IMG/VR virus record: IMGVR_UViG_3300025141_000016
Location: 186,001 to 250,000 of that record
Strand: one strand, 5' to 3'
Length of the DNA stretch: 64,000 nucleotides
Shown here piece by piece: positions 4,451 through 61,229 of this stretch (its first letter is position 1; every line of letters begins with the position of its first letter). Position numbers and translations under genes: made by a program. A model generated the notes under the pieces. That model worked only from the letters and a program-made list of their open reading frames with translations. It had not been told where the DNA came from and did no database searches.

Positions 4451-4588
4451 ATGCCTATTACCGCCACCAACCGAAGAACCCTCATCCGAAAAGCTGCTTC
4501 CCTACCCGTGGGATTGGCTCGGGAGGTCCAGTCGGCTCTGGGGGGTGGGAAGCTACCTGACGAGTTCGATGAGCACAGCTTTGAATGA
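4451..4588 (+). CDS. 45-aa peptide consisting mostly of a partial tag A
   Basis: GGAGA RBS; MPITATNRRTLIRKAASLPVG...; stop overlaps ATG 4585. Confidence 0.65.
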   Translation: MPITATNRRTLIRKAASLPVGLAREVQSALGGGKLPDEFDEHSFE

Positions 4589-7500
4589 TGCCCAGGCCCT
4601 CCCATAAACGAGTCGCCCGTCGTTACGCTTCCCGCACCGCGAGTGAAGCAGAGAGGTTCCCCCACGGTCCCAATGGCCCCAAGGCCGATGAGTGGTTCAG
4701 GGCATGGAGAGCACGAATAGGCCCCTACATGAGAGGAGCCTGTTACGACTTGGCGGGGTTCCTTCACGATGAAGGCGGGTTTCCCGTATGGGGGGTGATT
4801 GATGAAGACGGTATCATCGCCCACGCCTTCGCGTACAACCCCCGCATCCGAAAGGGCTTGGATGCTCGGGGTGAGGTAGACCCCGAAGATATGATGGATG
4901 GGGTAATCGGTGCCGAAAGTGTCCGTCCCCTGACCAAGAAAGAGAACCGATCTCTGTGCTCCAGATGGGGCTCCGACGAACGTGACTTCGCCCAACAGTT
5001 CGGGAAATACCTTTGGGATTTACGGGGGAGTCGTCTCGGAGCAGCCTTACGCACCGCGACCTCTACCAAGATCCCCGCAAAGACTGTCTACGCAGGGGGG
5101 TGGGAATGGAACAAGGGAGGCTTCGCGGACTGGCCTTCATTCCGACGCAAGCCCAAAAGAGAGCAGATCGCGTGGGCGAAGGAATACGTTGGCTCTGGTA
5201 TCCGCGAGCCCGTTGAGGTCACCGTGTACTCGGACGGGGGCGTGGGGTTTACGGACGGCCACCATCGAGTCATGGCGGGAACACTGCTCGACATTGAGAT
5301 CCCCGTGCGGGTCAAGTCCCGCAACTTCGACAAAGACCTGTGGCCTGACCTCCTTGCTCTGTTGAAGGCTGGGTACACACCCAAGCAGTACAACCCGCAG
5401 GGGTGGAAGCTAACCAACTCCGGTGTGCCGCCCCTGGAGGTTGTTCGCCGTGGTCCCAACGCCGCTGACGAATGGATCATGTCGAACGAGAGGGTCAAGA
5501 CCGCAGCCCGTCCCATCCGTCTCCCGACACGGGAGATCAAGGCTCTCGCCAAGAAGTTGGCGCAGCGGCTCTACCAGTGGGGGCTGCCGAAGCCCGGTCG
5601 GGTGATCGCACAGGAGTACCTGCCTCTCACCAACGTCATGGGTGACGAGGTGGAGGTCGAGATTCTACTGACGGGTACGCCCAATAAGTGGCGTGACCCG
5701 TTCAGCAGCGAACTGGTCCAAGGCGGATTCGCTCTGACGCATAAGAGGTCCGATAATCCTTTGGTGCGGATCTTTGTGAACCCGGACTTGGGCACCCGGA
5801 CGTTTGAGATGCGACCTCGCAGGATTGTCGAGAGCGAGTTGTACGAAATCCTTGCTCACGAACTCACCCATGCCGCAGACACATGGCTGGGCAAAGGCTC
5901 GGCGGTGGGCGCACTGGAAGGGCTGGGGCCGGGTTCCCACCACAACCACCCGGCAGAGGTCAAGGCACTGATGCGGGACGTGGTGACGCACCTTGAAGAT
6001 GGCGAGTACGTCCGCGAGTTGATGGGCTACGGCATGGACTTCAACACGGCTTTCCGCGAGGCACTGAAGGAAACCCAGTGGCCGGACATTGAGCCCTACC
6101 TGACTCCGAAGAACCAGAAGACCATCCTCAAAGGGGTCTACACCCACCTCCAAGACCAAGGGCTCACCAAGGCCGCGAGCAGGACCGCTGGAGGGTTCCG
6201 TCGGATCATTGATGAGATCGAAGACAAGACAGGCTTGGAGGCCAAGGTCGAGGCCGGGGCTGACAACATCAAGATCGAGTTGAAGCGCGGGACGAAGATA
6301 GTCGGCTACTTCCGAGCCTCGACGGTAGACCCAAACAGCTTCCAATGGAAGGGGGCTCCTCTGGACTGCAAAGAGGCGTGGGGTCAGATAGGGGAGCCGC
6401 CAGTCTGGATTGTCCGAGGAGCCCTGCTGAGTTGGTGGCTCCGAGGCAAGGGGTTCGGCAAGCTGCTCTACAAGGCATTGTTCTCCCACATCGCCTCCAA
6501 GAAGGGCGTTGTGGGTCCGAACCGTTGCTCCGGGGGAAACACATCACCGGATGCACAGCGGGTCTGGAAAAGCCTACGCTCGATGTACCCGAAGCATGGT
6601 CCCTTGATCGACTTGCGGAAGATGGCATCAGCCAGCCGAGTAGCCTCCCGGTTCCGCAGGATGGAAGCGGGAATGAGGACCGTCAAAGACCTTCCTGACG
6701 ACTGGTACGTCGAGATCACCGGTTCACTGTCGAATCTCGGCATCTATCTGCTGGACGGTGATGACAACACCGTAGGAAGTTTGGACATCCACCGGACAGG
6801 GGACTTCCTCCAAATCAACGAGATTCAGGCACGTCAGGGGTGGGGGCCGCTTCTTTACGATCTGGCTATGGAAGTCGCAAACGAGTTCAATGACGAGGGA
6901 CTAATGCCCGACCGTTCCTCGGTTTCGCGTGAAGCACGGGCGGTCTGGGAGCACTACCTCAATCGCCGTTCGGACGTTGAAGCGACCCTCTTGCCAGAGT
7001 GGGTACATGAACTCGCGGGTTCAGGGCACGTTCGCACACACTTGGACCGATATGAACCTGATTCCCCCCTGTCATACTCTTACCGGAAGACCACTGGAAA
7101 CCCGTTCATGCGGCAACTGGCGCTCCAAGGTCAGTTGGAGTCTGACGATTACTCTTTCGACCTCCCACGGGCCGCCGCCAGCCGTGTCGCCTCCCGGTAC
7201 GCAGGCCGAGCCTACTGCATCTGCTGGCCGACTGACGGATTGCTCTACGTCGAGGTGCCCAGCTACGACCACCTCCGCAATCTGTTGTTGACGCAGAAAT
7301 GGCGCGGGGACGCGCATTTGCGAACGAAGGACGGCTATGTCCCGTACTTCGGTGGCGGCATCGCCTTCAGCTTCACGAAGATGCGGATGAAGGGAGTCCA
7401 CCCCGTCTGGTACATCCGCAAGGGCTTCACAAAGCAACAGGCCGTGGCCCATCTGGTGGAGGATGGCTTGTTTGTGAGCGAGCGAGACGCGCTGCGTCAC

Positions 7501-9144
7501 GCTGAAGGGGATTACCCTGGCGAGTGTGAGTGGAAAGGCAAGAAGGGCCTATCGTTTACCCCGGATGCCATCGAATACGTCTGGTTAGGTAAGCGGGCAG
7601 GCAAACCGTTCGATGAGGCGAAGGCCGAGCTTCACCAGTTCATTCCCGACCTCGACGTGCGGTCGGAGGCCCCACCTTCGGGCAACAGTCCGTGCCGAGT
7701 TGCCTCCCGGTTCCGCAGGATGGAAGCGGGGCTCCTACAAGCCCCGCCGAAACTCGTCAAAGCCGTGACCGAATGGGCACAGGCCACCTTCGCTGACCGC
7801 GCCCACCACAACGCCCTGGCCAAACAGGCCAAGTTCGACCGGACAGGAGCCGGAATCATCGGGGGTCAGGACACCCTCGATCTGTGGTTCAAGAGCATGA
7901 AGCCTTGGAAGCGCACCTCCGCTGGGAAAGGGGGTGAGGTGTCCACTACGTTCGACCTCACCGACTACCTTGATGGTTGGCGGTATCGGCACCTCTGGGA
8001 CAACCTCAATGCAGGCGAGCAACGTGCTCTCCGCAAAGGCCCTCTCCGTCCGATCACCGTGACCAACGCTTTTGATGAGGGACGTTCGGGTGCCATGGGT
8101 GCTTGGTCAGACAAGAGACATGAGTTCCAAGTGTGGCTCCCCGCCGATGTCTGGATGCCAGAAGTCATCCCCGACCTTGTGGAGAAGCACGACAAACTCA
8201 TCCCGAAAACCGTTCGCCACGAGTTGCAGCACGCCACCCAAGTCATCCTCGGTGCCTTGACGGGTCAGGATTACGGGGGCCTCCCGAAACGGAAGGTGAG
8301 GCAGCCTCACAGCATCGAGGAACAACGCCAGAAGCAGATTGAGGACAACGCATCCGCATCGCGTGAAACCTTCCGCTTTCCACCAGACACGTCCAGCCCA
8401 CGCGACGACCGACGGCGAGATCGGTATTACCGCTCTGATCTGGAGTACCAGACCTCCCTCACCGATGCCGTGGGCGATTGGGAGTCCGACTCCCTACCTC
8501 CGGTGCAACGATGGTTGGACGAGACGGACCTCAATGACCGCGACAAGGGCAAGGTGCTTCGGTGGGCTGTTCGCACCTTCGTCGGTGAAGGGCGAGCACG
8601 GTTCCCCACCCTTCCGCGTGACTTCAAACGCCCTGACTGGAACCCAGGCAAGATCAAGCCGTCCGAGTTCTTTACGCACATCAAGGGCGACCGGGAGCGG
8701 TGGGCAGATGCCGTGGCGACCTTTTACAAGGAGATCGCCCGCACCACCAAACTCGCCCGCCGTGTAGCTACCCGGTATGCGAAGCGTGACTACCCGAAAG
8801 CCGGAGGCTCCGTGAGTGGGCTGCGGGTCAAAGGGGATGCCCCCAACCAGAACTCCATCAGCGCCTCGTTCTCCGACTATGAAGTGCTCCCCGACGTGCG
8901 AGAGGTACCCCTCTCCGACTTCGATGCCGCACCACATGACATGTTCTACTCGGCAAGTGACCTGGGGAGGGTCCGAGAACTCGCGGAAGCCATCGAACAC
9001 AACGGCTGGATTGCACCTCTCATCGTGGTCATAGACGATGACCCCAAGCCGTACATTCTGGAAGGAGCACACCGACTCGCCGCACTGCACACCCTGTCGA
9101 AACGAACCTTCCCCGCCCTCGTGGTGAGAGACCTCGACGGATGA
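4585..9144 (+). CDS. polyvalent polyprotein: papain-like, ParB-like, zincin, GNAT, GNAT, unknown, zincin, ParB-like; tag-B linkers
   Basis: GACY...AHAF...LDARG; DGHHR; HELTH; LRGKGFGKLLY; QGWGPLLYDL; HELQH; LEGAHRL. Modules are separated by SRVASRF/Y, RRVATRY and [KR]TA. Confidence 0.85.
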   Translation: MMPRPSHKRVARRYASRTASEAERFPHGPNGPKADEWFRAWRARIGPYMRGACYDLAGFLHDEGGFPVWGVIDEDGIIAHAFAYNPRIRKGLDARGEVDPEDMMDGVIGAESVRPLTKKENRSLCSRWGSDERDFAQQFGKYLWDLRGSRLGAALRTATSTKIPAKTVYAGGWEWNKGGFADWPSFRRKPKREQIAWAKEYVGSGIREPVEVTVYSDGGVGFTDGHHRVMAGTLLDIEIPVRVKSRNFDKDLWPDLLALLKAGYTPKQYNPQGWKLTNSGVPPLEVVRRGPNAADEWIMSNERVKTAARPIRLPTREIKALAKKLAQRLYQWGLPKPGRVIAQEYLPLTNVMGDEVEVEILLTGTPNKWRDPFSSELVQGGFALTHKRSDNPLVRIFVNPDLGTRTFEMRPRRIVESELYEILAHELTHAADTWLGKGSAVGALEGLGPGSHHNHPAEVKALMRDVVTHLEDGEYVRELMGYGMDFNTAFREALKETQWPDIEPYLTPKNQKTILKGVYTHLQDQGLTKAASRTAGGFRRIIDEIEDKTGLEAKVEAGADNIKIELKRGTKIVGYFRASTVDPNSFQWKGAPLDCKEAWGQIGEPPVWIVRGALLSWWLRGKGFGKLLYKALFSHIASKKGVVGPNRCSGGNTSPDAQRVWKSLRSMYPKHGPLIDLRKMASASRVASRFRRMEAGMRTVKDLPDDWYVEITGSLSNLGIYLLDGDDNTVGSLDIHRTGDFLQINEIQARQGWGPLLYDLAMEVANEFNDEGLMPDRSSVSREARAVWEHYLNRRSDVEATLLPEWVHELAGSGHVRTHLDRYEPDSPLSYSYRKTTGNPFMRQLALQGQLESDDYSFDLPRAAASRVASRYAGRAYCICWPTDGLLYVEVPSYDHLRNLLLTQKWRGDAHLRTKDGYVPYFGGGIAFSFTKMRMKGVHPVWYIRKGFTKQQAVAHLVEDGLFVSERDALRHAEGDYPGECEWKGKKGLSFTPDAIEYVWLGKRAGKPFDEAKAELHQFIPDLDVRSEAPPSGNSPCRVASRFRRMEAGLLQAPPKLVKAVTEWAQATFADRAHHNALAKQAKFDRTGAGIIGGQDTLDLWFKSMKPWKRTSAGKGGEVSTTFDLTDYLDGWRYRHLWDNLNAGEQRALRKGPLRPITVTNAFDEGRSGAMGAWSDKRHEFQVWLPADVWMPEVIPDLVEKHDKLIPKTVRHELQHATQVILGALTGQDYGGLPKRKVRQPHSIEEQRQKQIEDNASASRETFRFPPDTSSPRDDRRRDRYYRSDLEYQTSLTDAVGDWESDSLPPVQRWLDETDLNDRDKGKVLRWAVRTFVGEGRARFPTLPRDFKRPDWNPGKIKPSEFFTHIKGDRERWADAVATFYKEIARTTKLARRVATRYAKRDYPKAGGSVSGLRVKGDAPNQNSISASFSDYEVLPDVREVPLSDFDAAPHDMFYSASDLGRVRELAEAIEHNGWIAPLIVVIDDDPKPYILEGAHRLAALHTLSKRTFPALVVRDLDG

Positions 9145-10478
9145 TCAAACCCTCTGCCAGCCGTGTTGCCTCCCGGTATGCGGGCCGCTCTGTCCCTCCC
9201 TTCAAGGTTCGGGATGCGGCGGCGAAGACACCTTCGGATCTGCCCGATGGGTGGTATGTGGTTGCCCGCTGGGTCGGCCCGTCGAGGTCATTCCAGTTGT
9301 ACGACGGAAAGAAAGAGGTCGGGTATATCCGAGCGACCCCGAACTCCTCCTGTGGTGGGGCCTATACGGTGCGTCAAGTATGGGCACCCTCCGGTTGGGG
9401 TCCGATGCTCTATGACCTGATGATGGAGGATGCGGGTCGTTATGGGGTGATGCCGGATCGAAGTCAGGTATCGGAAGACTCCGCTCGTGTTTGGTTCCAC
9501 TACCTCACGAAACGCCGCCGTGATGTGACCGCACACCCTTTGTGGGATGACCCCTCCATTCGTGATGATCGGGCGTGCGGCTATCATTATGAAGATACTG
9601 GTCCCGGTGTGTTTGAGTCCTTGGACTATCGGTACGTCAAGGACGGTCGCGGAGTGACGGGCTCACTGGAGCGTGAGGGCAGGCTCTTTGAAGGTGAGCA
9701 TCCCGAGTGGTCCGGTGTCCGAAAAGAAGCTGTGGCGCAGCGGTATGCGAAGCGACCCTTCGACCTCGCCATGAACGGACTGAAAGGTCTGGACGAGGGA
9801 AGGACCGTGACCCTGTACCACGGCACCACACGATCCTTCGACCGCTTTGACCTCACCAAGTCCAGGGACGAACTCGTCAACGACTTCTACGGCAAGGGGA
9901 TCTTCCTGACCCCATCCAAGAACGTCGCCTGGAAGTACGCCAACGCCAACCGGAACATCGGCCTCGACCCCAGCATCATTGGCGAACTGAAACGCAAGAA
10001 GCCCCAGGCCGGAGCCTTTCTGGAAAGCCTCTACTCCCAGGGATCCGATGCCTGGGAACCCATGCTCGCAGAAGCCAAAGCCGCAGGGCACGAACCCTAC
10101 GAGCACGAGGACTTCCTCAACGGGGTGGACGGGAACACCCTCGGTGACATAGCGGGGTACATCGAAGGGAGTGCAGTCCCACCACGCGGGGGCGGCTCAA
10201 CCAACATCTTCTCGACCAGTAGCGGTGCCCCCTACTGGCTCTACGACACCCTCGATGAAGTGGGCCTCGACTCCTCGGCGTACCGACCCAAGGTCTACAC
10301 CGTTGGGGTCACCGTACAGAACCCCCTCATCACCGCAAGCGCATCCGAAGCCCGCAAGGCAAGAGCCAATGGCTACGACAGCGTGGTCTTCCACGGCTCT
10401 CGGCTGGTCGATGGCTGGCCCGAGGTCGCCGTGTTTTCACCCAGGAACGCCAAGATCAAAAAGGTCGAGGTCGAGTAA
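9141..10478 (+). CDS. tag-B protein: GNAT plus ADP-ribosyltransferase-like (ART-PolyVal type) domain
   Basis: SASRVASRY; GWGPMLYDLMME; LYHGT...YGKGIFLT...GYDSV...EVAVF. Confidence 0.8.
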   Translation: MIKPSASRVASRYAGRSVPPFKVRDAAAKTPSDLPDGWYVVARWVGPSRSFQLYDGKKEVGYIRATPNSSCGGAYTVRQVWAPSGWGPMLYDLMMEDAGRYGVMPDRSQVSEDSARVWFHYLTKRRRDVTAHPLWDDPSIRDDRACGYHYEDTGPGVFESLDYRYVKDGRGVTGSLEREGRLFEGEHPEWSGVRKEAVAQRYAKRPFDLAMNGLKGLDEGRTVTLYHGTTRSFDRFDLTKSRDELVNDFYGKGIFLTPSKNVAWKYANANRNIGLDPSIIGELKRKKPQAGAFLESLYSQGSDAWEPMLAEAKAAGHEPYEHEDFLNGVDGNTLGDIAGYIEGSAVPPRGGGSTNIFSTSSGAPYWLYDTLDEVGLDSSAYRPKVYTVGVTVQNPLITASASEARKARANGYDSVVFHGSRLVDGWPEVAVFSPRNAKIKKVEVE

Positions 10479-10613: not shown

Positions 10614-11824
10614 CGGACCCGTAGGGTCAGGAGAAACTAACCATGTCCAAGACCATTACCGCTTCTGACCGGAGCCGATTGATTCGACTCGCTTCAACAA
10701 TGTCTGCTGGCTCTCCCGAGCGGAAGGCCATCCTCGCTGGGTTGTCAAAGACCGCTGGAGAACACCCGCTGGGCCGCATGGCAATCGTCTACTTCGATTT
10801 GATCATTGAGGCTTACAACATTGAGGAGGACGCGGAAAACGGTGACGAGTTCGCACAGAGCCTCATGGATGATGGTGGTCGAGGTATGAACAAGTTGGAG
10901 GGTGACGCTCTCAAAAACCTGTCCCGCATGTTCGGACAGCGAATCAGCAACGAGGGGCATGGCCCCGACGGCGCACTTGTCTGCAAGTTCCCAGTGAACT
11001 CGTGGGCAGAGGTCAAGAAAGCCAATGACGTAATCAACAAGAACCACACTGGCGGTGACGATAACATCGACACGGGCGTTCAGTACGTTGAGGCACGGGA
11101 CTTTCGCCTCCACCCGGAGGGCGTGGGACAAAATCAGGCTTTCTACGGTGAGCACTCCCGTGCAGAGGGTGATTGGGACGAGTGGCTGTCCGACCACAAG
11201 TAATCCCTATCGGACCCGTAGGGTCAGGAGAAACTAACCATGCCCAAGACCATTACCGCTTCTGACCGAGCCAGCTTGATCCGGCTCGCTTCCTGTCTAC
11301 CCGTAGAGCGGAAGGCAATCCTGGCTGGGCTCCAGAAGACGGCAGCCATGGAGCCGTGGGATTCCCCCGATTACGTCTTTGAAGACCCAAAGGATGAAGA
11401 TGACTACATCACTCTCTTTGAGGAAGGGACCACACGCCACTACGATGTGAACGTCTCTGGCCGCGTGGATTCAGCGAAGGATGGGCTCCTCCTACTCCAC
11501 AAGGAGTTCGGTCGTGGGGGTAAGGAAAGCCGCGACTTTGAGGGTCAGTACCTCTGGGGGACAGGCTACTCCATCACAGCGATCCCCCCAAACAATCTGT
11601 CCTATGAGCGGTGGCATAACGACAAGGCCCACTTGGCAAAGATCCACAAGGTTCTGGACAGGATCAAGAAGATGCCAGGAGTCAAAAAGGTCAGCTTGGA
11701 GGAACGGCCCGACAGTGCAGACCTGCATAAGAAACAAGGGCAGGCCATGAAGCGGTGGGTCGCCAAGGGTCGGACCCTGCGAACTGCGAAGAAGACACCC
11801 TATCGGACCCGTAGGGTCAGGAGA
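10608..11824 (+). repeat. three exact 27-nt leader repeats CCCTATCGGACCCGTAGGGTCAGGAGA
   Basis: Copies at 10608-10634, 11205-11231 and 11798-11824, each followed by ATG and a tag-A coding sequence; internal hairpin GACCC-GTA-GGGTC. Confidence 0.95.
10643..11203 (+). CDS. tag-A protein, hypothetical cargo
   Basis: MSKTITASDRSRLIRLASTMSAGSPERKAILAGLSKTA. Confidence 0.85.
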   Translation: MSKTITASDRSRLIRLASTMSAGSPERKAILAGLSKTAGEHPLGRMAIVYFDLIIEAYNIEEDAENGDEFAQSLMDDGGRGMNKLEGDALKNLSRMFGQRISNEGHGPDGALVCKFPVNSWAEVKKANDVINKNHTGGDDNIDTGVQYVEARDFRLHPEGVGQNQAFYGEHSRAEGDWDEWLSDHK

Positions 11825-12259: not shown

Positions 12260-12784
12260 ATGCCCAAGACCATTACCGCTGCCGACCGATCCCGATTGAT
12301 CCGGCTCGCTTCCTCGATGCCCGTAGGCTCCGATGAGCGGAAAGCCATCCTCGCTGGGTTGAGGGTTGCTGACCGCGCTATCGACAAAGCCGTGGACTAT
12401 CTGGTGAAGGCCCAGCGTATTCTCTCGGGAGTCCCCGGATGGGGCACTGCTCCGTATGGGGGGTATGACCGCTCCCTGACCGAGTTGATCAAGGTCTTAC
12501 GGGCCGGACCCAACAAGAAGGCTTCAGCTTCGTTGAAGGATGTGCTGCGAAAGTGGCCCGAGTTTGCCCCCGAGATCCAAAAGGAACTGCGAGGGCTGCG
12601 GGCGGCGTTGCGAGGCGACCCCGACTTCGGGCGCGTGAGTAATGCCCTCATACAGATCCAGATGCGGCTGGAAGACGACCACCGCAGAGACCCAGCGGCT
12701 TTCCATGCCCGCGCACCCTTCAACAAAGCACTCGCTGACTTTGCAAAGGCCGAGTACGAACACAAGACGGGCAATAAGTGGTAG
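12260..12784 (+). CDS. tag-A protein, hypothetical cargo
   Basis: MPKTITAADRSRLIRLASSMPVGSDERKAILAGLRVA. Confidence 0.85.
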   Translation: MPKTITAADRSRLIRLASSMPVGSDERKAILAGLRVADRAIDKAVDYLVKAQRILSGVPGWGTAPYGGYDRSLTELIKVLRAGPNKKASASLKDVLRKWPEFAPEIQKELRGLRAALRGDPDFGRVSNALIQIQMRLEDDHRRDPAAFHARAPFNKALADFAKAEYEHKTGNKW

Positions 12785-21489: not shown

Positions 21490-21574
21490 TGGGAGTCTCC
21501 AGTTGGCCTCTCGATGAGGCATAGGGAAGATGAAAGGGAACAGGATGGGGGGGTGTGCTCACCCCCTGCACCCA

Positions 21575-35205: not shown

Positions 35206-35558
35206 CACAGCCCCTTGATCTTGTCGTCAATGTCCCTGGCGATAGGGGCGAGTTTCTTCAGCGCGGAGTCGAGGTTGCTGATGATCTCCTCTCGGAGTGC
35301 GCGGAGCCCTTTCTGGTCGCTGCCGTGTTCCTCAATCCAGAGGGCTAAACCATCCTCGGGGTCATCGAGGTAGGTCCACTTGGCCGCATCATGCACAGCC
35401 TTGACGACCCCCTTGTAGAACTCGGCATTGAGTTTCTGGATCTCGCGGGAAGGCGGGTCAGACCGACCTCCCCGCTTCAGGGCAGCGAGGATTTCCCGGC
35501 GCTCCTCTGACCCCTTGGGGAAGGAGGCAGCTTTTCGGATAAGGGTTCGGCGGTTCAT
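35205..35558 (-). CDS. tag-A protein, hypothetical cargo
   Basis: MNRRTLIRKAASFPKGSEERREILAALKRG. Confidence 0.85.
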   Translation of the reverse strand: MNRRTLIRKAASFPKGSEERREILAALKRGGRSDPPSREIQKLNAEFYKGVVKAVHDAAKWTYLDDPEDGLALWIEEHGSDQKGLRALREEIISNLDSALKKLAPIARDIDDKIKGL

Positions 35559-35944: not shown

Positions 35945-36015
35945 TTTGACCCCTTGGGGAAGGATGCTCGGCGGATCAATCGGCTTCGGTCAGCGGCGGT
36001 CAGGCTCTTGGACAT
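35941..36015 (-). CDS. 24-aa tag-A stub
   Basis: MSKSLTAADRSRLIRRASFPKGSK*; TAATG and ATGA couplings; not in the ORF track. Confidence 0.6.
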   Translation of the reverse strand: MSKSLTAADRSRLIRRASFPKGSK

Positions 36016-37992: not shown

Positions 37993-38694
37993 ATGCGCCT
38001 ACTGATGATCATCTGCACCCTCATCCTTTCGGCGTGCATCAAGAAGCCTGTCCCGACCAGCCCAGTGGAGTCACCGGATCCGATTCCGGTGGTGTTGATC
38101 TCATTGGAGTCCGCGAGTTCCATCAGTGCTGTAGCGGGGCAGTTTGCCCAACAGTCTGGCGACTATGTGGGTTGTGTGACCGGCCTTGCCCTATCGGCGG
38201 CTTTGACCACAGCCCGCGACGGGGTGGCTGGGAACATTGAGGGTGGCCTCATCCCTGGCGTGGACCTCGATGTGGGTGTGTGCTTGGACCTCGCAGAGTC
38301 GCAACCCGAGGGCGAGGATGTTCCGGCGCTTGTCCAGCCCCTTGTGGATGTTGGGCTCCAGACAGTCAAGACTGTCCTCGACATTTACGGCAGTCAGATC
38401 GACTGCGCGGCGTTGGCATGGACCCAGGCTGGTCTGACCTACGCGGGTCAGGTGGTGGGTGCTGCGGTTGCAGAGATCGAAAGCCCCGACGGTAAGGTGA
38501 CCTTGGGTGAGGTCAGCGTGGACCTTGCAGACTGTGAACCTGCTCCCGAGGAACCTGCTCCCGAGGAAGCCCCTGTCGAGGAACCTGCTCCCGAGGAACC
38601 TGCTCCCGAGGAACTTGCTCCCGAGGAACCTGCTCCCGAGGAACCTGCTCCCGAGGAACCTGCTCCCGTCGAGGAGTCTACCGACTCACCGTGA
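37993..38694 (+). CDS. lipoprotein with C-terminal EEPAP repeats
   Basis: MRLLMIICTLILSAC lipobox; GAGGA RBS. Confidence 0.75.
   Translation: MRLLMIICTLILSACIKKPVPTSPVESPDPIPVVLISLESASSISAVAGQFAQQSGDYVGCVTGLALSAALTTARDGVAGNIEGGLIPGVDLDVGVCLDLAESQPEGEDVPALVQPLVDVGLQTVKTVLDIYGSQIDCAALAWTQAGLTYAGQVVGAAVAEIESPDGKVTLGEVSVDLADCEPAPEEPAPEEAPVEEPAPEEPAPEELAPEEPAPEEPAPEEPAPVEESTDSP
38536..38675 (+). repeat. 15-bp coding tandem repeat GAGGAACCTGCTCCC (EEPAP)
   Basis: About nine near-identical units. Confidence 0.9.
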
Positions 38695-39751
38695 TGCGGT
38701 CAGCGAGGAAGGTGACATCTGCCTTCCCCCATGGTGCCCATATCTGTTCCCAGTTGCCGCGTTTGCCCGCCGTGGGGGGGATGTAGAGCAAGACCATCTT
38801 GACCTTGGCTTCCCCGAGCATGACCATATCCGCTCCCTGGAAGGGGATCGCTGTGTTGGCCATGACCCCAAACACCAGGGAGAATGAGTCTATCCCGTCC
38901 GACCGATGTGGATGGGCCTGGGTGAAAGCCTTGCCGGACGAAGATTCCCACCAGGGAATCGCCCCTCTCCCCAGGTAGGAAAAGAGCAGGCGACCCAGGC
39001 GGTCGGATTCCATCGGCGTTGCTTGCAACTCTCGTCTCCGTCGGACTTTCTCTCGGCGGTCGAGAGGGCGACCATCGGGGCCAAAGCCGTACTGCACGGT
39101 TTCATATCGGAGTGCCCGTTTGAGTTTGCCGGGTAAGTCGCTGGGGCCGAAATACTCTCCGTACCAGAGTTCTACGTCGCGGGGCTTCAAGCCCAGTTCG
39201 TTGATCATGTCGTCTACTTCGTCAGCAGACACCTTACGGATCTTCCCGTTCTCACCCACGGCGTACCACTGTCTCACGTCACCCTTGCTGGCGTGGACCG
39301 AGCACCCGAGCCCGGTGTAGCAGAAGTCGGGGTCAATCGAAATGGTGCCAGAGTCCGGCTTCAGTTCGCCATCAGCCCCCGTAAGATGGGCGAAGACGCG
39401 CCCGTTGCCGTCGATCTCCGCGACGAACAACTCGTGGCCAAGCCGTTTGCCTTGCTGGCTGACCCCCCACTTCGCCACCTTGTCCCTGTCGGCACCCCAT
39501 TGAGCCCCAAAGGCTCGCTCCCCCTCAACGGAGTAGGAGCCGCCCTTGATCTCACCTGTGTCCCAAATGTCCCTGACTTCTTCGCCGTCCATGACCCGGA
39601 ACAGCGGCACCGAGGAGAGGAACTTCCCCACGGCGATGTTCCCACCGAAGCGGGATTGGGCTTTCTCGGTAGCTTCGGGGATCACCTCGACCTTCACGCT
39701 TCCAGCGGAGAGGTGACGGGCTGCAACTCGGCTGCAACTCGGACGGGTCAC
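38678..39751 (-). CDS. tag-B protein, possible ART-like N-terminal domain
   Basis: MTRPSCSRVAARHLSA; LFRVMDGEE...GEI. Confidence 0.7.
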   Translation of the reverse strand: MTRPSCSRVAARHLSAGSVKVEVIPEATEKAQSRFGGNIAVGKFLSSVPLFRVMDGEEVRDIWDTGEIKGGSYSVEGERAFGAQWGADRDKVAKWGVSQQGKRLGHELFVAEIDGNGRVFAHLTGADGELKPDSGTISIDPDFCYTGLGCSVHASKGDVRQWYAVGENGKIRKVSADEVDDMINELGLKPRDVELWYGEYFGPSDLPGKLKRALRYETVQYGFGPDGRPLDRREKVRRRRELQATPMESDRLGRLLFSYLGRGAIPWWESSSGKAFTQAHPHRSDGIDSFSLVFGVMANTAIPFQGADMVMLGEAKVKMVLLYIPPTAGKRGNWEQIWAPWGKADVTFLADRITVSR

Positions 39752-45504: not shown

Positions 45505-48500
45505 ATGGCACCCTTCCCCCAGCGTCTTCGATGCCAGGAGGACGGTGACTTCTACTTGATGGATCTGGCGAAGGATACCTTCGTTCACTTCACGCCCCCC
45601 GAACGGGCCGAGCAGATCATCCGGTCAGGTAAGTTGCTGATGCGACCGCCGTACAAGAAGTTCGGGATCGACGCGGTGACGGCGGTGTCAGCGGTATGGG
45701 GTAGCTTCGTACCCGGTGTGCAAACCACCCACAGCAAGCGTGATGATCTTGTCGCGGTGGTGTTTCAGACCAGAACTCTTCCCCAGGTCGGTCACCCCGA
45801 GGAGGTCATCTGGAAGCGCGATGTGGCTCTCGTCAACCCCAAGATCGTGTCCTACTCCAAGGGCAAGGGGATGCTGCGAAGTGGGTTCGACGGTCAGGTC
45901 TACTACTCGATGCCCTCGTGGTGCGATGGGGTCGAGAGTCGAACGGCCTCCCTGCTTTGCAATCCCAATGCTCTCTCGGGAGCATGGATTGACCCCACGG
46001 GGAAGGTATACGAGATACGGCGTGGGCTGACACATGACCAGTGGGCTGACGACCACCTCACCAACGACAGGGAATACCAGCAACAGATGTGGGATGTTGG
46101 TGCAGGTTCTCTCCTCCAAGATCGAGGATGGGTCCGGTTCGTCAACTTCATCAACATGGCTGTTGGAACCCGACCCTCTCGGGCAGCGATGGAAGCGGCT
46201 GCTGACCTCGTAGCTGATTGTGTGCTCTCCAGGCGTGATGTTGACCCCGAGAAGGACACCCTTTGGCTTGAGACGGGGCCGATGCCCCATGCCCGTGAAC
46301 TGTCTATATCCACCTTCATAGAGGAATACGGTTCCAAGGCCACGGAGGAGAAAATGTGGGAAGGTTTGCTGGCCCGCTTGGCTTCCCGAGTCACTGCTCG
46401 TTATCTCGATGCCGCCTGTGGTCCGGTGCCTCGGATCGTGGTTGCAGCCAACCTCAAAGCGTTGAAGCCGAACGACTGGCTGACCGTCTACCACGGCACT
46501 ACGCTGTCCACGGCCCCGAAACTACTCAACGGGTTCGACTCTACGAGAGTCAAGTCCCGACAGTTCGGGGGGCCGCGTCATAAAGGGCTGTTCGTCACCC
46601 CCACCTTCCGCACGGCACGCAACTTCGCCTCGTATGGACCAACCGTGCTGGAAATGGTGGTCCGGGCCAAGAACCTCCACGGCACGGACTACTCCGGGGT
46701 CACTGGACGGGATGATCCCAGAAGGGAAGAGATTTGGCGAGACAAGTACCCCGACTCCTTTCGGCCTTACTTGTCCCAGACATTGACACAGGGACATGAA
46801 CCGCAGGCGCTACTTCAAGGGCTCGTCGCACCGCGCCAGATCAAACGGGTTTGGCACGCACCGGGCCAGAATGAGCCGGGACAGTGGTATTCCCGTAAGG
46901 AGTTCCTCGATCTGGGGCTGGACCCCTCGGCCAACCCACGGGACAAGCAAGACCCCCTGCGGGATCTGGGCATTGACCTCTCCTACCCCAACTACGACTA
47001 TGACGAGTTCATAGAAGCCCTCGGGGTAGCCTATGGAAAACCCGGCAAGCCAATGAGCCGTGAACGCATCGAGAAGACGCTCACCATGCACGCTGAAATC
47101 TCGATGATTCCGGGGCGTTCTGACACATTACTGGAACTGATTGAGGGGGCGGGGTTCCAAGGACGCGCAGCACAGCGTTACGCCGACCGATTCCGTGAAA
47201 CCCTCGCTCAACAAAGCCGAGAGGTTGCCGCCAGCGCAAGTCGAGTCGCTGCCCGCTACCTCGTCGCAGACTGCAATCTGCGGCTTCCCTCTCATTCATG
47301 GATTGACCCCAAGGGGAAGGTTCATTTGGTTCCCCTTATGCACGATGTCTGGGCCGAGGAAAAGATACGATCTACGCCCTCGATGCTGCGTTCGTTTGTG
47401 AAACGCTACAGGGAATACTATCCCGATGAACTCTATGAGATCGACCATCCGTGGACCAGTTTTCTGGTTGACCAAGGTTGGGTGAGGGTGGCGAACTTTC
47501 TGAACTTTGAGGGGAGAGATCACCTTGTTTCCCCGCACGCTTGGGAGTCAGCCGCAGACCTCATCATCAACTGTGTGGTCAAGAAGCAGCTTGACCCCGA
47601 GACTACTGTCGTGACGGTCGCTGGATATGGGAAGCAGCGATACTCGGTGTCCCAGATCGTCAGGGAATGGGGTGGGCGCAAGGCCGAGGATCGGTTGTTT
47701 GGGGCACTCATGGCCCGCACCGCTGCCCGACTTTGGTATCACGGGACTGAAAAGCGTTTTGAAGAGTTCAAGACCTTTGAGAGCCACACGTTTGGGTCTG
47801 ACCCCTCCGAAGTGCCTCTGTTCTTCTCGCCCTCCAAGTCCTTTGCAAAGATGCACGCCCAAGGACCGAAGGGGGTCATCTACACGGCGCGGCTGAAGTG
47901 GCGCAAGGTGTTTGATAGCGCCAACTTGTATCGGGAATCTCGGTACTGGCCCCCCGAACGTGACGCTCTGACCCAAGAGGGGAAGGCCCTGTACGACGAC
48001 CTCGTAGGGGGCAAGGTGTTTCCCGGCATTGATGAAGACGATCTGCTTGACGGGTATCCGAGTCTTTGGTCGCAGGTGCTCCGTATGGATTACGATGTGA
48101 TTGAAACGACGGAGTTCAAGCGGTGGCTCAAAAAGAACGGTTACGACGCGGCTTATGTCACGGGAGATGGTGAGCAGAACGTGTTTGTCTTCTCCCCGAG
48201 ACAGGTCGAGGTTGTGGGCGTGCAAAGGGCCTCCGCATCCGTTTCTGCTTCCCGTGTCGCTGCTCGCCATCCCGTCGTGGACATTGACCCCAGCAAAGTA
48301 AAGTTCAAGATCCGATCCAGTAGCGATGCTGTGGCTGTGGAAATGCGGTATGGCGGTAAGCGCATTGGCGGCATGAACGCCCACAAGGTCCGTTATCCAG
48401 AAGAGAAGGACTGCCCTCGGGACGTTACCGCGTTGGCTGAACGCTTCCCCGAGTTGGTGACGGGAGAATGGAAGCGCAGCGATGGTGAGGTGTGGCGATA

Positions 48501-49564: not shown

Positions 49565-50578
49565 ATGTCCGAACTTCACCTGTATGACTTCGACGGAACA
49601 CTGTTCCGAAGTCCCCATGAGCCTGCGGTGTGGGATGGTCAGTGGTGGAACGACGTGCGCTCCCTGATCCCCCCGTGTGTCCCACAGAAGCCGGGGGCTG
49701 ATTGGTGGGTCAACCAAACTGTCAGCAGTGCCAAGCAGTCGATCTCCGACCCAGACGTGTTTGCCATGATGATCACAGGGAGGAATGCAAACTCGGGTCT
49801 TCGGTTCCGGGTGCCAGAACTCCTCAAACAGCGAGGGCTCAACTTCGATGAGGTCCATCTGACCCCCGTTAGCAGCACCCTGGGGTACAAGAAGAAGCTG
49901 CTGGGGAATACGTTGGGGCGGTATCCCCTCATCGACACCGTGCGGATGTGGGACGACAGACCCTCACACCTCCGAGCCTTCGCGCAGGTTGCGGAGAAGA
50001 TGGGGATTGACCCCGAAAACATCCATGCCACCCAGGTCCGGGCCAAGTCCAAAGACCCCGAGTGCGAAGAAGACAGCCCAGCAGGGGGTGGTTTCCTGTC
50101 AGACCCCCCTCCAATCGGAGACGTGTGCCGATATGTAGGGGTTTTTCTTGATGCTTCTTCCAAGGCAGCCCTGTCACATGCGTTCCCTTTTGCCCACAAC
50201 AAGATCAAGAACGACCATGTGACCCTCTGCCTTGGCCCCGCTCTTGGGGGAAACATAGCGGAGGGTGCCCTCGATCTCCTGGGAACGAAGGTACGCATGA
50301 AGGTGATTGGCTACGCCGAGGATGAGGATGGGCAAGCAGTAGTGGTTTCTGTTCCCCCCGGACTCATCTCGGACGCTTCCAGAATCCCTCATGTCACCTT
50401 GTCCATCTCGGACTCGGTGCAGTCCAAGTACAGCAACACTCTCCTCCGCAAAGGGTGGGAGCGTGTTCGCGGCCCCGCCATCAGTGGGGTGATTGATATG
50501 TTTCCGCGCTCCATGCGAAGGCAAGCAAGTGCAGTTCGGGTAGCCTTCCTGCATTCTCGCTTGGGCCGTAGCGGGTAG
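49565..50578 (+). CDS. HAD phosphatase (Swiss-Army-knife RNA-repair type) fused to a 2H phosphoesterase
   Basis: LYDFDGTLFRSP, ITGR, MWDDR; two HVT motifs; C-terminal RQASAVRVAFLH. Confidence 0.8.
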   Translation: MSELHLYDFDGTLFRSPHEPAVWDGQWWNDVRSLIPPCVPQKPGADWWVNQTVSSAKQSISDPDVFAMMITGRNANSGLRFRVPELLKQRGLNFDEVHLTPVSSTLGYKKKLLGNTLGRYPLIDTVRMWDDRPSHLRAFAQVAEKMGIDPENIHATQVRAKSKDPECEEDSPAGGGFLSDPPPIGDVCRYVGVFLDASSKAALSHAFPFAHNKIKNDHVTLCLGPALGGNIAEGALDLLGTKVRMKVIGYAEDEDGQAVVVSVPPGLISDASRIPHVTLSISDSVQSKYSNTLLRKGWERVRGPAISGVIDMFPRSMRRQASAVRVAFLHSRLGRSG

Positions 50579-51949: not shown

Positions 51950-52771
51950 ATGACCCCTTCAAGCCAACGTGTAGCTTCCCGGTGGGCGAAGTCCCAAGCC
52001 AACTGGACGCTGCCCTATCTGGAAAAACTCATCAAGGCAGCCGAGGGTGACCCCACAGGGTGGGGGGAGAGTAGTCCTGCCGCCCGCGTCCTGCGGCAGA
52101 TGATCAAGTCCTCCGGGTTCGGGAACCTTGACCCGTTCCCAGTAGGTGAACTGTGGGACTACTTGACCTCATACGATGTGGACTCCGACGAGATCGCGGT
52201 GTTGAAGAAAGTTCGACCCCCCCGAGCACGGAAAAGGAAGGTAGGTCCGACATTCTACGAAGCACTACGCGCCTTTGAGCAGGCAACGGGGAAACACACG
52301 ACCACATCCCGCATTGACTGGGACAACGACCACCACTTGGCCCCGGCATTGTTGGCGATCACCAAAGCCGTCTCCAAGTTGCCCAAGCGGGCTGCCCGCC
52401 TCTGGCAGTCGGAAGTCAAGGAGGTGATGCTGGTCGGGCGCAACAAGAGCACCGAGGATGCCTCTTGGCGGGCCGGTGGCGTGATGCGTTTAGTGCTCGG
52501 AAAGAGTGGTTTCCACTCTGTGTCCCAAAGCGTTCCCCCCTGGCGCTCCCACATTGTCCATGAACTCGGGCACGCACTGGAGGACAAGTTGAATCTGGTG
52601 GTGACCGCTTGGTCCTCGGACCCCTACGGCCATGAACCATACATTTCGGCATACGCGGACACGAACGCCTCGGAGGACTTTGCCGAGACGTTTCAGGCTT
52701 TGGAGATGGAGCCGAGCCGCCTACGACGAGTAGCCCCTGCCAAGTATGAGGACATGAAGGCTCGCTTTTGA
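51950..52771 (+). CDS. tag-B zincin metallopeptidase
   Basis: MTPSSQRVASRW; IVHELGHALE...ISAYADTNASEDFAE. Confidence 0.8.
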   Translation: MTPSSQRVASRWAKSQANWTLPYLEKLIKAAEGDPTGWGESSPAARVLRQMIKSSGFGNLDPFPVGELWDYLTSYDVDSDEIAVLKKVRPPRARKRKVGPTFYEALRAFEQATGKHTTTSRIDWDNDHHLAPALLAITKAVSKLPKRAARLWQSEVKEVMLVGRNKSTEDASWRAGGVMRLVLGKSGFHSVSQSVPPWRSHIVHELGHALEDKLNLVVTAWSSDPYGHEPYISAYADTNASEDFAETFQALEMEPSRLRRVAPAKYEDMKARF

Positions 52772-52823: not shown

Positions 52824-53201
52824 ATGTCTGACCAACCCAGTACCCGGCGAGTGGCCCGTGCGTTCCAAGCGGCACGAAACACCCGCCGCCTCAAAGAAGC
52901 CCTGGAGGCATACCTCCACTCCATCCAAATCGAATCCGAGCAGATGATGGATGACCCCAAGTGGGGGAAGGGGGGCAAGTATGACCCCGTAGCGGATGCC
53001 GGTGTTTGGATCGGGGACCGGGCCAAGGACGAAGCGGGGGCCGATGTGGTGCTCCACTTTGATGGGGCTGGGTATGACTATTTCTACTACGGGTCACGCA
53101 TGGCTGAACCTCACCGCAAGGCGGTGAGGGCCATCGCCAAGAAGCTGGGCTACGAGATGGAAGACAACACCAACTGGAACATCGGCTTCTACCCGAGATA
53201 A
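52824..53201 (+). CDS. tag-B protein, hypothetical cargo
   Basis: MSDQPSTRRVARAFQAA. Confidence 0.75.
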   Translation: MSDQPSTRRVARAFQAARNTRRLKEALEAYLHSIQIESEQMMDDPKWGKGGKYDPVADAGVWIGDRAKDEAGADVVLHFDGAGYDYFYYGSRMAEPHRKAVRAIAKKLGYEMEDNTNWNIGFYPR

Positions 53202-59178: not shown

Positions 59179-60201
59179 GTGAATCACCCGGACCCCAAAC
59201 GAGTTGCTATCGCTGTGTCTCCGCAGCATCAGGCGGCTCGGGTAGCGGCTCGCTACGCCTCCTCCCCTCTGATAAAGGAGTTGGAGGAAGACTACCATTC
59301 CCTCTGGCATGACAAGCATGAAAGGGAGGACGGAAAGCCTCGGCTGTGCCCACTGAAAGCTGGGGTGCCCGATTGTGAGAAGATGACCCTCAAAGAGTTC
59401 GTTGCCAAGTGGAAGAGGCACGGGCTGAAGGCGGTAAAGGTCCAACGGCTTCCTACCACCTACTCCTACTATGACTGTGGGAGCCACGCCACGCTGCGGA
59501 CGGAACAGATCCATGGCAGCCGACTTTACCCCCAAGGCGACATCACGGTTGACTTGAACACCCCCATTCCTTGGAGCAAGGCGAAGAAAGGCGACTGGGT
59601 TCAATGGCCATGGCACCACGGAGTGGTGATTGATCCCAAGCGCAAGATTGTGGAGAGTTGTTGGGGGGTAGACGGATGGGTGTTTCAACACCCCGTAGAC
59701 CTTTCTACTTATGGGGCGAAGCCTACGGTTCATTCCGTGCATCCAAAAGAGAAGACCAAGACCGCCAGTTCTGATGGTCAGTGTATCGTCGGAGGCCAGT
59801 GCTTCCGCTACGCTGTCATGTGGGATGGCAAAGGCCCAGGATCATCCCCTGACGACATTGTTGTTCACGGGAACGTGCATGGCTTGGTCGGTCCTCACGC
59901 CTGGGTCGAGCGGAAGGACGGTCGCGTATTTGACTGGCAGACGGTTGAGGGGATCTGGGAGACGCTTGGCCGTCAACCTGACCCCAGCTACACCAAGCGC
60001 GGCTGGCCGAAGCGTGAGTTCTACGCGGAGTTCAAGCCGCGCAAGATGAAGCGGTACACCGCCGAAGACGCGCTGATCAACGGGATACGGAACCGGCACT
60101 ACGGTCCCTGGGACGCGGATGAGGAGTACCGTCCTCCAATCCGATCAGCATCGCGGGTTGCCGCTCGCTACTTGATGGCTTCTCGGCGGCAACGCCGGTA
60201 G
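59179..60201 (+). CDS. tag-B protein with two papain/transglutaminase-like (Cys-His-acid) domains
   Basis: AARVAARY; YDCGSHA...HHGVV...VESCWG; KTKTAS junction; GQCFRYA...PHAWVE...VFD; C-terminal SASRVAARY. Confidence 0.75.
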   Translation: MNHPDPKRVAIAVSPQHQAARVAARYASSPLIKELEEDYHSLWHDKHEREDGKPRLCPLKAGVPDCEKMTLKEFVAKWKRHGLKAVKVQRLPTTYSYYDCGSHATLRTEQIHGSRLYPQGDITVDLNTPIPWSKAKKGDWVQWPWHHGVVIDPKRKIVESCWGVDGWVFQHPVDLSTYGAKPTVHSVHPKEKTKTASSDGQCIVGGQCFRYAVMWDGKGPGSSPDDIVVHGNVHGLVGPHAWVERKDGRVFDWQTVEGIWETLGRQPDPSYTKRGWPKREFYAEFKPRKMKRYTAEDALINGIRNRHYGPWDADEEYRPPIRSASRVAARYLMASRRQRR

Positions 60202-60210
60202 CTTCTTTAT
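60196..60210 (+). promoter_or_regulatory. class L promoter motif (TTAT variant)
   Basis: CGGT-AGCTTCT-TTAT, 34 nt before ATG 60244. Confidence 0.55.
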
Positions 60211-60243
60211 CTCTCCGATAAGGTCAAGTACCGGAGACAACCC

Positions 60244-60693
60244 ATGTCCAAGACCCTTACTGGATCTGACCGTAAACGCCTCATCCGCCTTGCTTCTACC
60301 CTCCCCACGGGGTCAGATGAGCGGAAGGCTATCCTTGCTGGGCTTCACCATGTCGCCGTCCACAAGACCGCCTCCAAGAAGACCACCCTCTCGGCAGATT
60401 TGAAGTTGAAGGACGGGACCGTGTACGCGAAGGGATCGCGTGCAGAGGTGTTCTTCTCGGAGCGCAACCCCTCCATGTCCGAGGTGGAGATTGAGGGTAG
60501 GAAGATCAAACTCCGCACGGTCAGTCTCCACAAGTACCTCCGTGGTTTTCCAAAGCCCCCCTCCACGAGAGCCTTGCAGAAGATGGACAGTGAGGCTTCC
60601 GGGCCAACGGTCAGTGGGGTACGCAACGTCGAGATGGACGGCTATGGTCCCGATGGGTCACCCTCGTGGATGCTGGCCATGGGGCTCATCTGA
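60244..60693 (+). CDS. tag-A protein, hypothetical cargo
   Basis: MSKTLTGSDRKRLIRLASTLPTGSDERKAILAGL...HKTAS. Confidence 0.85.
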   Translation: MSKTLTGSDRKRLIRLASTLPTGSDERKAILAGLHHVAVHKTASKKTTLSADLKLKDGTVYAKGSRAEVFFSERNPSMSEVEIEGRKIKLRTVSLHKYLRGFPKPPSTRALQKMDSEASGPTVSGVRNVEMDGYGPDGSPSWMLAMGLI

Positions 60694-60773
60694 CCCTGTG
60701 CGCCTCGGTGGTCGCTCCGTGAAGGGGGTCAACCACCTACCGAATGTCCGTAGAGGGCACAACGGAGAATGGT

Positions 60774-61229
60774 ATGAGCGCATCCCCCCAGAAAGTAGCC
60801 GAGCGGTGGGCCTCCGAAGCCAAGTTCTTCCGTGGCCTCCACAGTCGCAACAAGGGCATCTTCTTTCGTGGGGCCAAGAACCCCGGTGCCGGTGGCGGGG
60901 CTGGCTTTGGTGCTCTGGGACGTGGCCTTTATCTCGCGTGGGACAAGGGGATCGCCCAGTTCTTTGCTGACCGAGCCGGGGGTCAGGTATACGCCTACAA
61001 GATTCCGTCCAGCCTCAAACTGCTCGATGCCCAGAGCAGCGAGATGGCGACGATCAAGGAAGGGATGGGATTCAAGCCCTGGCAGTATTCAGACGATCCC
61101 ATGTACGCCGCTGTCGTCACAGCCGAGGTAAAAGACCTTGGATACGACGGGGTGATCTCCGACAAAGCGGCAGATGGCCTTGTCTTGTTCGATCCCCGTA
61201 AAGCGAAGCTGGTGGACCTACCGGAGTGA
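60774..61229 (+). CDS. tag-B ADP-ribosyltransferase-like protein
   Basis: SPQKVAERW; FFRG...LGRGLYLA...GYDGVI...LVLFDP. Confidence 0.7.
   Translation: MSASPQKVAERWASEAKFFRGLHSRNKGIFFRGAKNPGAGGGAGFGALGRGLYLAWDKGIAQFFADRAGGQVYAYKIPSSLKLLDAQSSEMATIKEGMGFKPWQYSDDPMYAAVVTAEVKDLGYDGVISDKAADGLVLFDPRKAKLVDLPE

Follow-up and report, generated by a model that had tools for sequence, protein, structure and literature searches.

The subject of this work is a 64-kb stretch of viral DNA (bases 186001-250000 of the 297,104-bp IMG/VR contig IMGVR_UViG_3300025141_000016; hereafter the window) and a short peptide, called tag B, which recurs in the proteins encoded there. We found that tag B is a portable leader, lying outside any fold, at the start and rarely at the end of mobile effector-type modules in one clade of huge, uncultured phages. 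It has been kept by selection on the peptide, at a fixed distance from the N-terminus, and it is structurally unanchored; it may form a short amphipathic helix. The long open reading frames (ORFs) in which it is repeated are fusions of genes that had been tagged beforehand. As to its role, the reading that we prefer, and to which we would give an even chance, is that tag B serves as an address, docking the modules on one common phage partner, most likely the interior of the procapsid.

All the motif copies listed in the original prediction were found in the ORFs named for them, and the gene starts it had used at 49565, 51950, 59179 and 60774 match database gene calls. The fuller consensus of tag B reads (P/A)-S-(A/P)-x-R-V-A-(S/A)-R-(Y/F)-(A/L)-x-A and covers about 12-15 residues. 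Scanning of the window in six frames for RV[AT]xR[YFHW] gave 15 matches, 13 of them in the coding frame of real genes. The core RVA[AS]R[YFH] was seen nine times in the window proteome (about 16,000 residues), as opposed to 0.007 copies expected (Poisson P ~1e-25), and never in 300 shuffles. As this pattern had been defined after seeing the data, an independent test was run, in which a position-specific scoring matrix (PSSM) was trained solely on 92 tags from other genomes; at a cut-off of 14 bits, it detected 12 sites in the window proteome, compared to 0.02 per shuffle. Tag B is thus strongly enriched over the Arg/Ala/Val-rich background, which was one of the checks proposed for it. One could argue that a proteome encoded at ~60% GC, in which Arg, Ala and Val are common (7.5, 9.0 and 6.8%, respectively), would produce such peptides by chance. 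However, the numbers given above, the positional regularity of the copies and their conservation in orthologues leave this explanation virtually no probability, and a chance origin is already refuted.

Information in the PSSM peaks at R0, V1, A2, R4 and Y5, each core position having 3.1-3.7 bits; the residue at position -1 is variable. Judging from the sequence, the spacing 0, 1, 2, 4, 5 would correspond to helical periodicity; that of R0/R4 and V1/Y5 matches two faces of a helix, which is modelled only at values below 55 of the predicted local distance difference test (pLDDT). From position +6 to +11, the preferred residues are A, L, Q, N, R and K, and no conserved Glu is present in or after the tag. 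The first Arg of the core falls at residue 7-9 in the N-terminal copies of the window and in about 46 of the 57 N-terminal copies of relatives. Codon usage varies between the copies, and the longest DNA run shared by a pair of tags has a median of 7 nucleotides and does not exceed 13 nucleotides in any pair but one; the use of different codons and the shortness of the shared runs indicate selection on the peptide rather than a DNA repeat. The single outlying pair, both members of which belong to the same gene, has an exact 29-nucleotide repeat (6646-6674 and 7705-7733) comprising the end of two tags and the following RRMEAG, and looks like a recent intragenic conversion between tags.

Besides N-terminal positions, tandem tags occur in P0303, P0085, P0097 and the ORF starting at 59179, and tags located 3-9 residues before the stop were found in four independent proteins (the latter ORF, P0162, P0304 and an ORF of L033). 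No consistent start codons were found before the internal tags, so these copies are truly internal, and separate translation of the polyprotein units was ruled out on the same ground. When a DNA pattern for SASRVAARY was searched in IMG/VR, it was present only in the two contigs of this genome, besides matches in non-coding or junk frames; the exact nine-residue version is therefore genome-specific, and the looser motif is widespread.

The most extensive array of tags is carried by p4585 (coordinates of this and other features are collected in Table 1). This polyprotein consists of an N-terminal region with a ParB-like DGHHR stretch, followed by M1, zincin-like (HELTH), M2, GNAT-like, U2, U3, U4, zincin-like (HELQH), and U5, ParB-like; Pfam support for these modules stays below threshold (Peptidase_M91, GNAT and, weakly, ParB_N). 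Residues 320-1519 were searched by HMMER against 1.84 billion representative proteins, which gave 2117 matches. Among the best 150 of these, which were re-aligned, starts and ends of homology blocks cluster at residues ~300, 530, 685, 867, 1038 and 1393, leaving five gaps crossed by at most one match (509-550, 667-702, 830-894, 1012-1059 and 1368-1391). These gaps hold all four of the intact internal tags, an outcome that random placement reaches in about 0.4% of cases (permutation P ~0.004). At the two boundaries devoid of a good tag (around residues 303 and 531), decayed tags are present. Homologues of M1 that stand alone (P0153, P0178 and P0215) start with an intact tag B and then have the ARPIRLP stretch of M1, and those of M2 (P0212 and P0169) start with tag B ahead of the shared GGFR+I..EIE stretch. 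Likewise, P0159, homologous to U2, and P0155, homologous to U4, open with tag B. Residues 682-877 of p4585, moreover, align to residues 5-207 of p9141. Stand-alone homologues of U3 begin directly past the tag site and are untagged. The tag of U5 is the weakest case in this protein, because many U5 homologues are without it.

In an AlphaFold model of p4585 residues 680-1392, based on an alignment of 22 sequences, pLDDT exceeds 90 in the cores and is 41-54 in the helices that hold the three tags, and the predicted template modelling score is 0.39; the segment is thus modelled as beads on a string. The internal copies had been expected to fall between domains, and mapping bore this out: they are situated at breaks between homology blocks and in helices of low pLDDT, outside folded cores. 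Positions of the copies and the homology blocks together confirm that tag B marks N-termini, a few C-termini and boundaries between modules. Since single units of the polyproteins have stand-alone tagged homologues, the long ORFs can be regarded as fusions of tag-plus-module units; this is what had been proposed for them, and the edges of homology blocks and the drops of AlphaFold confidence at the tags agree with it. The modules occur in many orders and combinations across contigs. U3 (7183-7695, plus strand) is a module of about 170 residues with the start YCICxxxDGLLYVE and a conserved terminal Cys, found stand-alone in many contigs; Foldseek gave a weak hint to DarT for it (probability 0.80, E 0.18).

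The relation between the tag and its cargo was examined for the ADP-ribosyltransferase (ART) modules of the ART-PolyVal family. In p9141, the distance from the degenerate AVAQRY to LxLxxxGLxGL, with which the ART domain starts, is the same as that of intact tags in 39 homologues. Homologues of this half of the protein are mostly stand-alone proteins of about 260 amino acids from contigs of up to 530 kb. Among the 120 listed, at least 39 have tag B, about 30 have another leader, YSYDRR, and about 10 one of the tag-A type (both described below), and some open directly with the fold. Where another domain precedes ART, the tag sits between the two, as in P0057, composed of zincin, tag and ART. The polyprotein p45505 is made up of an untagged U1, an ART-like U2, U3 with ART-PolyVal (residues 745-901), and U4, the first part of which is M2-like. 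The ART fold itself holds a conserved PSKRVAxKYAxANRN at about residue 70, which is similar to tag B (P-S-x-R-V-A-x-K/R-Y-A) and has the variant KNVAWKYA in ORF 9141-10478. This likeness could be a coincidence, the origin of the tag or mimicry; the stretch matches loose versions of the motif and has to be left out of tag counts. ORF 30462-31238 (plus strand) starts with MLLYHGTSERVARLAL, and its LYHGT is how proteins of the ART-PolyVal fold typically begin. Pfam gave no match for this ORF and a leader is missing; by its sequence it may be an untagged ART paralogue.

Conservation of the tag in a single family could be followed in p39751, for which 30 homologues of 33-77% identity were collected. 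Nearly all of them open with M-x-x-(P/A)-S-x-x-RVA-x-R-(Y/F), and one opens with a leader of the tag-A type instead. The AlphaFold model of p39751 has a mean pLDDT of 88, with residues 1-4 and 9-15 below 50; despite this low pLDDT, few parts of the alignment are conserved as well as the tag. In this family Arg52 is invariant and S-T-G at 145-147 nearly so. Foldseek gave weak hints to DarT and toxin ARTs (probability at most 0.11), on which p39751 may, by a weak inference, be a further divergent ART. Searches with both AlphaFold models against the PDB revealed nothing significant, only weak DarT-, GNAT- and toxin-ART-like hints. Among the remaining tagged proteins, p59179 has a degenerate RVAIAV at residue 8, which makes its N-terminal tags a tandem pair. 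Its relatives show tandem tags in P0303 and C-terminal tags in P0304, and stand-alone homologues of its Cys/His module open with tag B. The zincin-like p51950 has a weak Peptidase_Mx match. The copy RVAFLH near the end of the HAD_SAK_1 protein is preceded by ASAV, as are good copies, but has Leu in place of Arg, and its status as a tag is uncertain.

Table 1. Tagged proteins of the window and the copies of tag B that they carry (aa, amino acids)
Feature	Position	Strand	Evidence or remark
Polyprotein p4585, 1519 aa, ~8 modules	4585..9144	+	HMMER homology blocks; HExxH motifs
Core RVARRY, N-terminal, p4585 residues 9-14	4609..4626	+	PSSM 23.0 bits
Decayed tag RVKTAA, start of p4585 M1	5491..5508	+	Intact tags in stand-alone M1 homologues
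Decayed or deleted tag KAASRTAGG, start of p4585 M2	6169..6195	+	Tagged stand-alone M2 homologues
Core RVASRF, internal, start of p4585 U2	6637..6654	+	PSSM 29.0 bits
Core RVASRY, internal, start of p4585 U3	7183..7200	+	Helix of pLDDT ~46 directly before core of pLDDT >90
Core RVASRF, internal, start of p4585 U4	7696..7713	+	pLDDT ~41; exact 29-nucleotide run in common with the copy at 6637
Core RVATRY, internal, start of ParB-like p4585 U5	8761..8778	+	91 homology blocks start within 20 residues
p9141, 445 aa: tag B, U2-like module, degenerate tag, ART-PolyVal	9141..10478	+	PF18760, 42.7 bits (cut-off 31.2)
Core RVASRY, N-terminal, p9141 residues 8-13	9162..9179	+	PSSM 31.9 bits
Degenerate tag AVAQRY before p9141 ART domain	9729..9746	+	Canonical place
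p39751, 357 aa: tag B and confidently folded two-part body	38678..39751	-	30 homologues; AlphaFold
Core RVAARH, N-terminal, p39751 residues 8-13	39713..39730	-	PSSM 30.9 bits
Polyprotein p45505, 1247 aa	45505..49248	+	PF18760, 46.3 bits; paralogy to p9141 and p4585
Core RVTARY, internal, start of p45505 U2	46387..46404	+	
Core RVAARY, internal, start of p45505 U3	47242..47259	+	PSSM 18.6 bits
Core RVAARH, internal, start of p45505 U4	48253..48270	+	
Weak C-terminal copy RVAFLH, HAD_SAK_1 protein (ORF 49565-50578)	50537..50554	+	7 residues before stop
p51950, 273 aa: tag B (RVASRW, 51968-51985) and zincin-like module (HELGH)	51950..52771	+	PSSM 38.8 bits
p52824, 125 aa; weak N-terminal copy RVARAF at 52848-52865	52824..53201	+	Below PSSM threshold
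p59179, 340 aa: N-terminal tandem tag, two modules, C-terminal tag	59179..60201	+	
p59179 tag RVAIAV	59200..59217	+	
p59179 tag RVAARY	59239..59256	+	
p59179 tag RVAARY	60154..60171	+	9 residues before stop
p60774, 151 aa; N-terminal variant KVAERW at 60792-60809	60774..61229	+	PSSM 24.1 bits

Tag B is found in front of unrelated modules (ART, two zincin-like, GNAT-like, U2 and Cys/His), some family members being untagged, and on the same cargo it is interchangeable with a tag-A-like leader and with YSYDRR. The original prediction suggested two loading routes differing in cargo, with recognisable enzymes as most of the cargo of tag B and unknown domains as most of that of tag A. The former suggestion was not supported, as the same ART and p39751 families carry tag B or a tag-A-like leader in different genomes. 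The latter was overstated: only ART-PolyVal and HAD_SAK_1 pass the Pfam cut-offs, most tag-B cargo is below them, and the zincin, GNAT and ParB assignments come from motifs and sub-threshold matches.

The leader called tag A, (T)xTxSDRxxLIRLASxxPxGSxERKAIL, comprises about 30 residues and stands at N-termini and, in three proteins, also internally, thus obeying the same unit-start rule as tag B. On the plus strand, its sites are 10643-10750, 11240-11340 with ~11831, 12260-12360, 60244-60350, and 62685-62790 with ~63850; on the minus strand, it occupies the N-termini of 34411-35208, 35205-35558, 36015-37886 (with an internal copy at about residue 534) and 2981-3643. The tag-A proteins found nothing in Pfam, and the leader had no match by tblastn against GenBank phages. 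A variant, LRSxVIRLAHxxPxLRPxLLPLLK, is present in other huge phages, and both variants stand in tandem in one protein of L022. The third leader, (A)YSYDRR(V)AAK, precedes the ART-PolyVal fold at the place of tag B in P0007, P0009, P0024, P0025 and about 26 others, and it also occurs internally, behind another domain, in P0045 and P0087. A census of LR745208, a 485-kb genome of an uncultured phage, revealed about 10 tag-B-like and 9 tag-A-like leaders, a density below that of the window; structural genes were not identified in this census, and the tagged proteins of this genome had no Pfam match.

Free-standing tagged genes were fused repeatedly, giving polyproteins that are strings of tag-plus-module beads, in which the internal tags were either kept or decayed. 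Each module might be docked through its tag onto one common phage-encoded receptor, to be packaged and subsequently injected with DNA. The likeliest place of this receptor would be inside the procapsid during its assembly, on the scaffold, the portal or the capsid protein's inner face, and several tags per polyprotein could add avidity. Three considerations make the capsid our preferred destination. The cargo corresponds to the repertoire of polyvalent proteins, which were predicted to be virion-packaged and injected (PMC5512222 and PMC9503650). Internal proteins of phage T4 provide a precedent, as these diverse anti-host proteins have the capsid targeting sequence as their sole shared element (PMC3012670). 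Finally, within the window and 24 kb of its flanks, tag B is absent from ribonucleotide reductase, the UvrD-like and RecD2-like helicases, RecA and the SbcCD-like pair, and also from thymidine kinase, methyltransferases and CobS/T-like proteins; this absence from proteins of replication, recombination and nucleotide metabolism argues as well against an import signal for a replication compartment.

Several facts weigh against docking in the procapsid. No structural (capsid-like) gene was recognised in the window or its flanks, so tagged genes are not near head genes there, and in two other huge phages the tagged ART genes sit among accessory, not head, genes. Annotations of the cargo other than ART-PolyVal and HAD_SAK_1 are sub-threshold, and the sole relative in GenBank, LR745208, is an unannotated metagenomic genome.

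Three other explanations deserve consideration. The occurrence of modules in many orders and combinations, together with the 29-nucleotide run in one tag pair of p4585, which suggests conversion, would be compatible with tag B being a junction of cassette shuffling, comparable to the demarcation motifs of polymorphic toxins and with no binding function of its own. However, the remaining pairs lack the conservation at the DNA level by which such junctions let cassettes be swapped through homologous recombination, the peptide is kept across genomes of 33-77% identity at a fixed distance from the initiator Met, and erosion like that of two copies in p4585 would be expected of a neutral scar; we thus consider this explanation very improbable. 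Position in linkers between modules would equally be expected of a protease site, at which either a prohead protease or the embedded zincin-like modules cut, releasing enzymes and trimming propeptides. There are two HExxH modules in p4585 and one in p51950, the order zincin, tag, ART is realised in P0057, and the small residues S-A-S ahead of the core would suit cleavage; autoproteolysis by metallopeptidase domains was indeed proposed for polyvalent proteins (Iyer et al., PMC5512222). It is difficult, however, to reconcile cleavage with the fact that most copies belong to single-module proteins, in which they lie 6-8 residues from the N-terminus and a cut would have little effect, while others stand shortly before the stop or in tandem. 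Moreover, the spacing is helical and not that of an extended strand, position -1 is free, p45505 has three tags but no HExxH, and a Glu-type site, as known for T4 and phiKZ-like prohead proteases, is lacking. Docking is therefore favoured over cleavage by the helical spacing and the free position -1, by the little gain from cutting near the termini of single modules, by p45505, and by the tandem copies, which suggest avidity. A proteolytic role seems unlikely to us, and it could coexist with targeting, as in the T4 capsid targeting sequence.

The features of a short linear motif would fit equally well if the modules were docked on some hub other than the capsid, for example a host target such as the machinery of transcription or translation, a compartment formed by the phage inside the cell, or a chaperone or AAA+ loader of the phage. 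The distance of tagged genes from head genes and the presence of MoxR/CobS-like AAA+ and VWA genes in the window are in line with such a possibility. Nevertheless, the untagged state of replication, recombination and nucleotide-metabolism proteins speaks against import into a replication compartment, and the leader on the same cargo varies with the phage clade (B, A-like or YSYDRR), as would be expected for a co-evolving phage-encoded receptor and not for a conserved host hub. We would therefore grant this alternative only a minor share of probability. A twin-arginine translocation (Tat) signal was also considered and rejected: the two Arg residues, adjacent in the Tat motif S/T-R-R-x-F-L-K, are split by V-A-x, and no copy is followed by the hydrophobic stretch that in Tat signals comes next, with an A-x-A site.

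Phage T4 packages an ART, Alt. Its capsid targeting sequence resembles tag B in being a short N-terminal leader and the sole element common to diverse host-acting proteins that are packaged and injected (PMC3012670). The two are not related in sequence. The T4 leader directs proteins into the scaffolding core of the prohead and ends in a prohead-protease site made up of a hydrophobic or small residue, any residue and Glu, at which it is removed; tag B lacks such a Glu-ended site. Unlike the T4 leader, tag B is found also internally, in tandem and near C-termini, its cargo family can bear any of at least three leaders, and packaging is here only inferred. In polyvalent proteins, ART (including ART-PolyVal), metallopeptidase, ParB-like and GNAT domains are similarly joined into long polypeptides (Iyer et al. 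2017, PMC5512222). p45505, p9141 and p4585 are multi-domain proteins of this kind, p4585 according to sub-threshold Pfam matches and motifs, and they are phage-encoded, as the 297-kb viral contig and its ribonucleotide reductase of phrog_367 indicate. On the other hand, a term search of that paper (PMC5512222) found no short recurring leader at domain starts, and classic polyvalent proteins with a ParB-like module (up to 3203 amino acids) lack tag B; among 150 representatives, there were only 21 copies, concentrated in close relatives.

Cargo-loading peptides of encapsulins and encapsulation peptides of microcompartments are short, conserved and often form an amphipathic helix. They stand at a terminus or between domains, joined through linkers of low conservation, and attach a variety of enzymes to the inside of a protein shell, which in encapsulins has the phage capsid fold. 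Tag B is similar to them in lying outside the folded domain and in having N-terminal, internal and C-terminal copies. It differs in that no shell gene adjoins it in the window or the flanks, the putative shell would be a DNA-filled head, there is no sequence similarity, and its binding is postulated. It is conceivable, albeit at rather less than an even chance, that a clade of huge phages uses at least three interchangeable leaders (tag B, the LIRLA-type tag A and YSYDRR) to load dozens of modules into the DNA-filled capsid by encapsulin-like docking. Signals of PVC effectors (PVC being an extracellular contractile injection system) reportedly comprise about 50 residues with no sharp consensus. 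They are N-terminal and transferable, and they load unrelated effectors into a phage-derived particle (PMC9054023), which makes them comparable to tag B; the latter, however, is sharp and has about 12 residues, and PVC particles are tubes resembling a tail rather than a head.

Targeting of packaged phage proteins by a short leader is already known in kind. What is new, as far as can be told, is the motif, its presence at every bead of the polyproteins, the C-terminal and tandem forms, and the occurrence, across a clade of huge phages, of several leaders that can replace one another. In term searches of papers of the Aravind group on polyvalent proteins, jumbo phages and NAD-ADPr systems, the leader was not mentioned, and we found no description of tag B in the literature on capsid targeting sequences, huge phages and packaged effectors, the coverage of which was incomplete. 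Nearly all that is known of huge phages comes from metagenomes, and the majority of their genes are dark matter. About one-third of the coding capacity of the 64-kb region consists of modules tagged with such leaders. If the leaders act as a loading code, sequence alone would reveal which proteins an uncultured phage injects, and the fusion of genes into polyproteins would serve to co-load modules. The tag would flag effector-type modules (ARTs and putative peptidases), those likeliest to be deployed against the host early in infection; it would explain the build-up of polyvalent proteins by fusion of pre-tagged genes, and it could be used in engineering, to bring foreign proteins into large phage heads by means of a short peptide. 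Three leaders on one cargo family and about 20 tagged proteins in 64 kb point to an unrecognised hub in huge-phage biology, which could be found with a 15-residue peptide even if the receptor were not the capsid.

As regards the genome itself, an identical copy of the window is held by a 150-kb contig. No close relative was detected among 50,697 GenBank phage records by megablast of 10 kb or by tblastn of p45505, and tblastn of p9141 gave a single match, to LR745208. When a clue to the host was sought in GTDB species genomes, no relatives of p39751 were found. The window encodes a class II ribonucleotide reductase (phrog_367) with 43% identity to proteins of Streptomyces phages, a UvrD-like helicase of 1193 amino acids, SprT-like and MarR-like proteins, and the HAD_SAK_1 RNA-repair protein; no tRNA genes were found in it. 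The flank genes reached are those of replication, recombination and nucleotide metabolism only. A recombination block lies just past the window end (L036, 12385-17071, downstream in the 240.6-kb assembly); preceded by a RecD2-like helicase of 751 amino acids, it contains RecA-like, SbcC-like (AAA_15/AAA_23) and SbcD-like (Metallophos) proteins and a PD-(D/E)xK nuclease. On the minus strand of the window, the gene of the MoxR/CobS-like AAA+ ATPase (20272-21522) adjoins that of the VWA-domain protein (21658-23307), these products belonging to phrog_249 and phrog_1576. The same kind of VWA protein is encoded near the tagged ART genes of two other huge phages, and one may speculate that the AAA+/VWA pair is a possible chaperone or loader.

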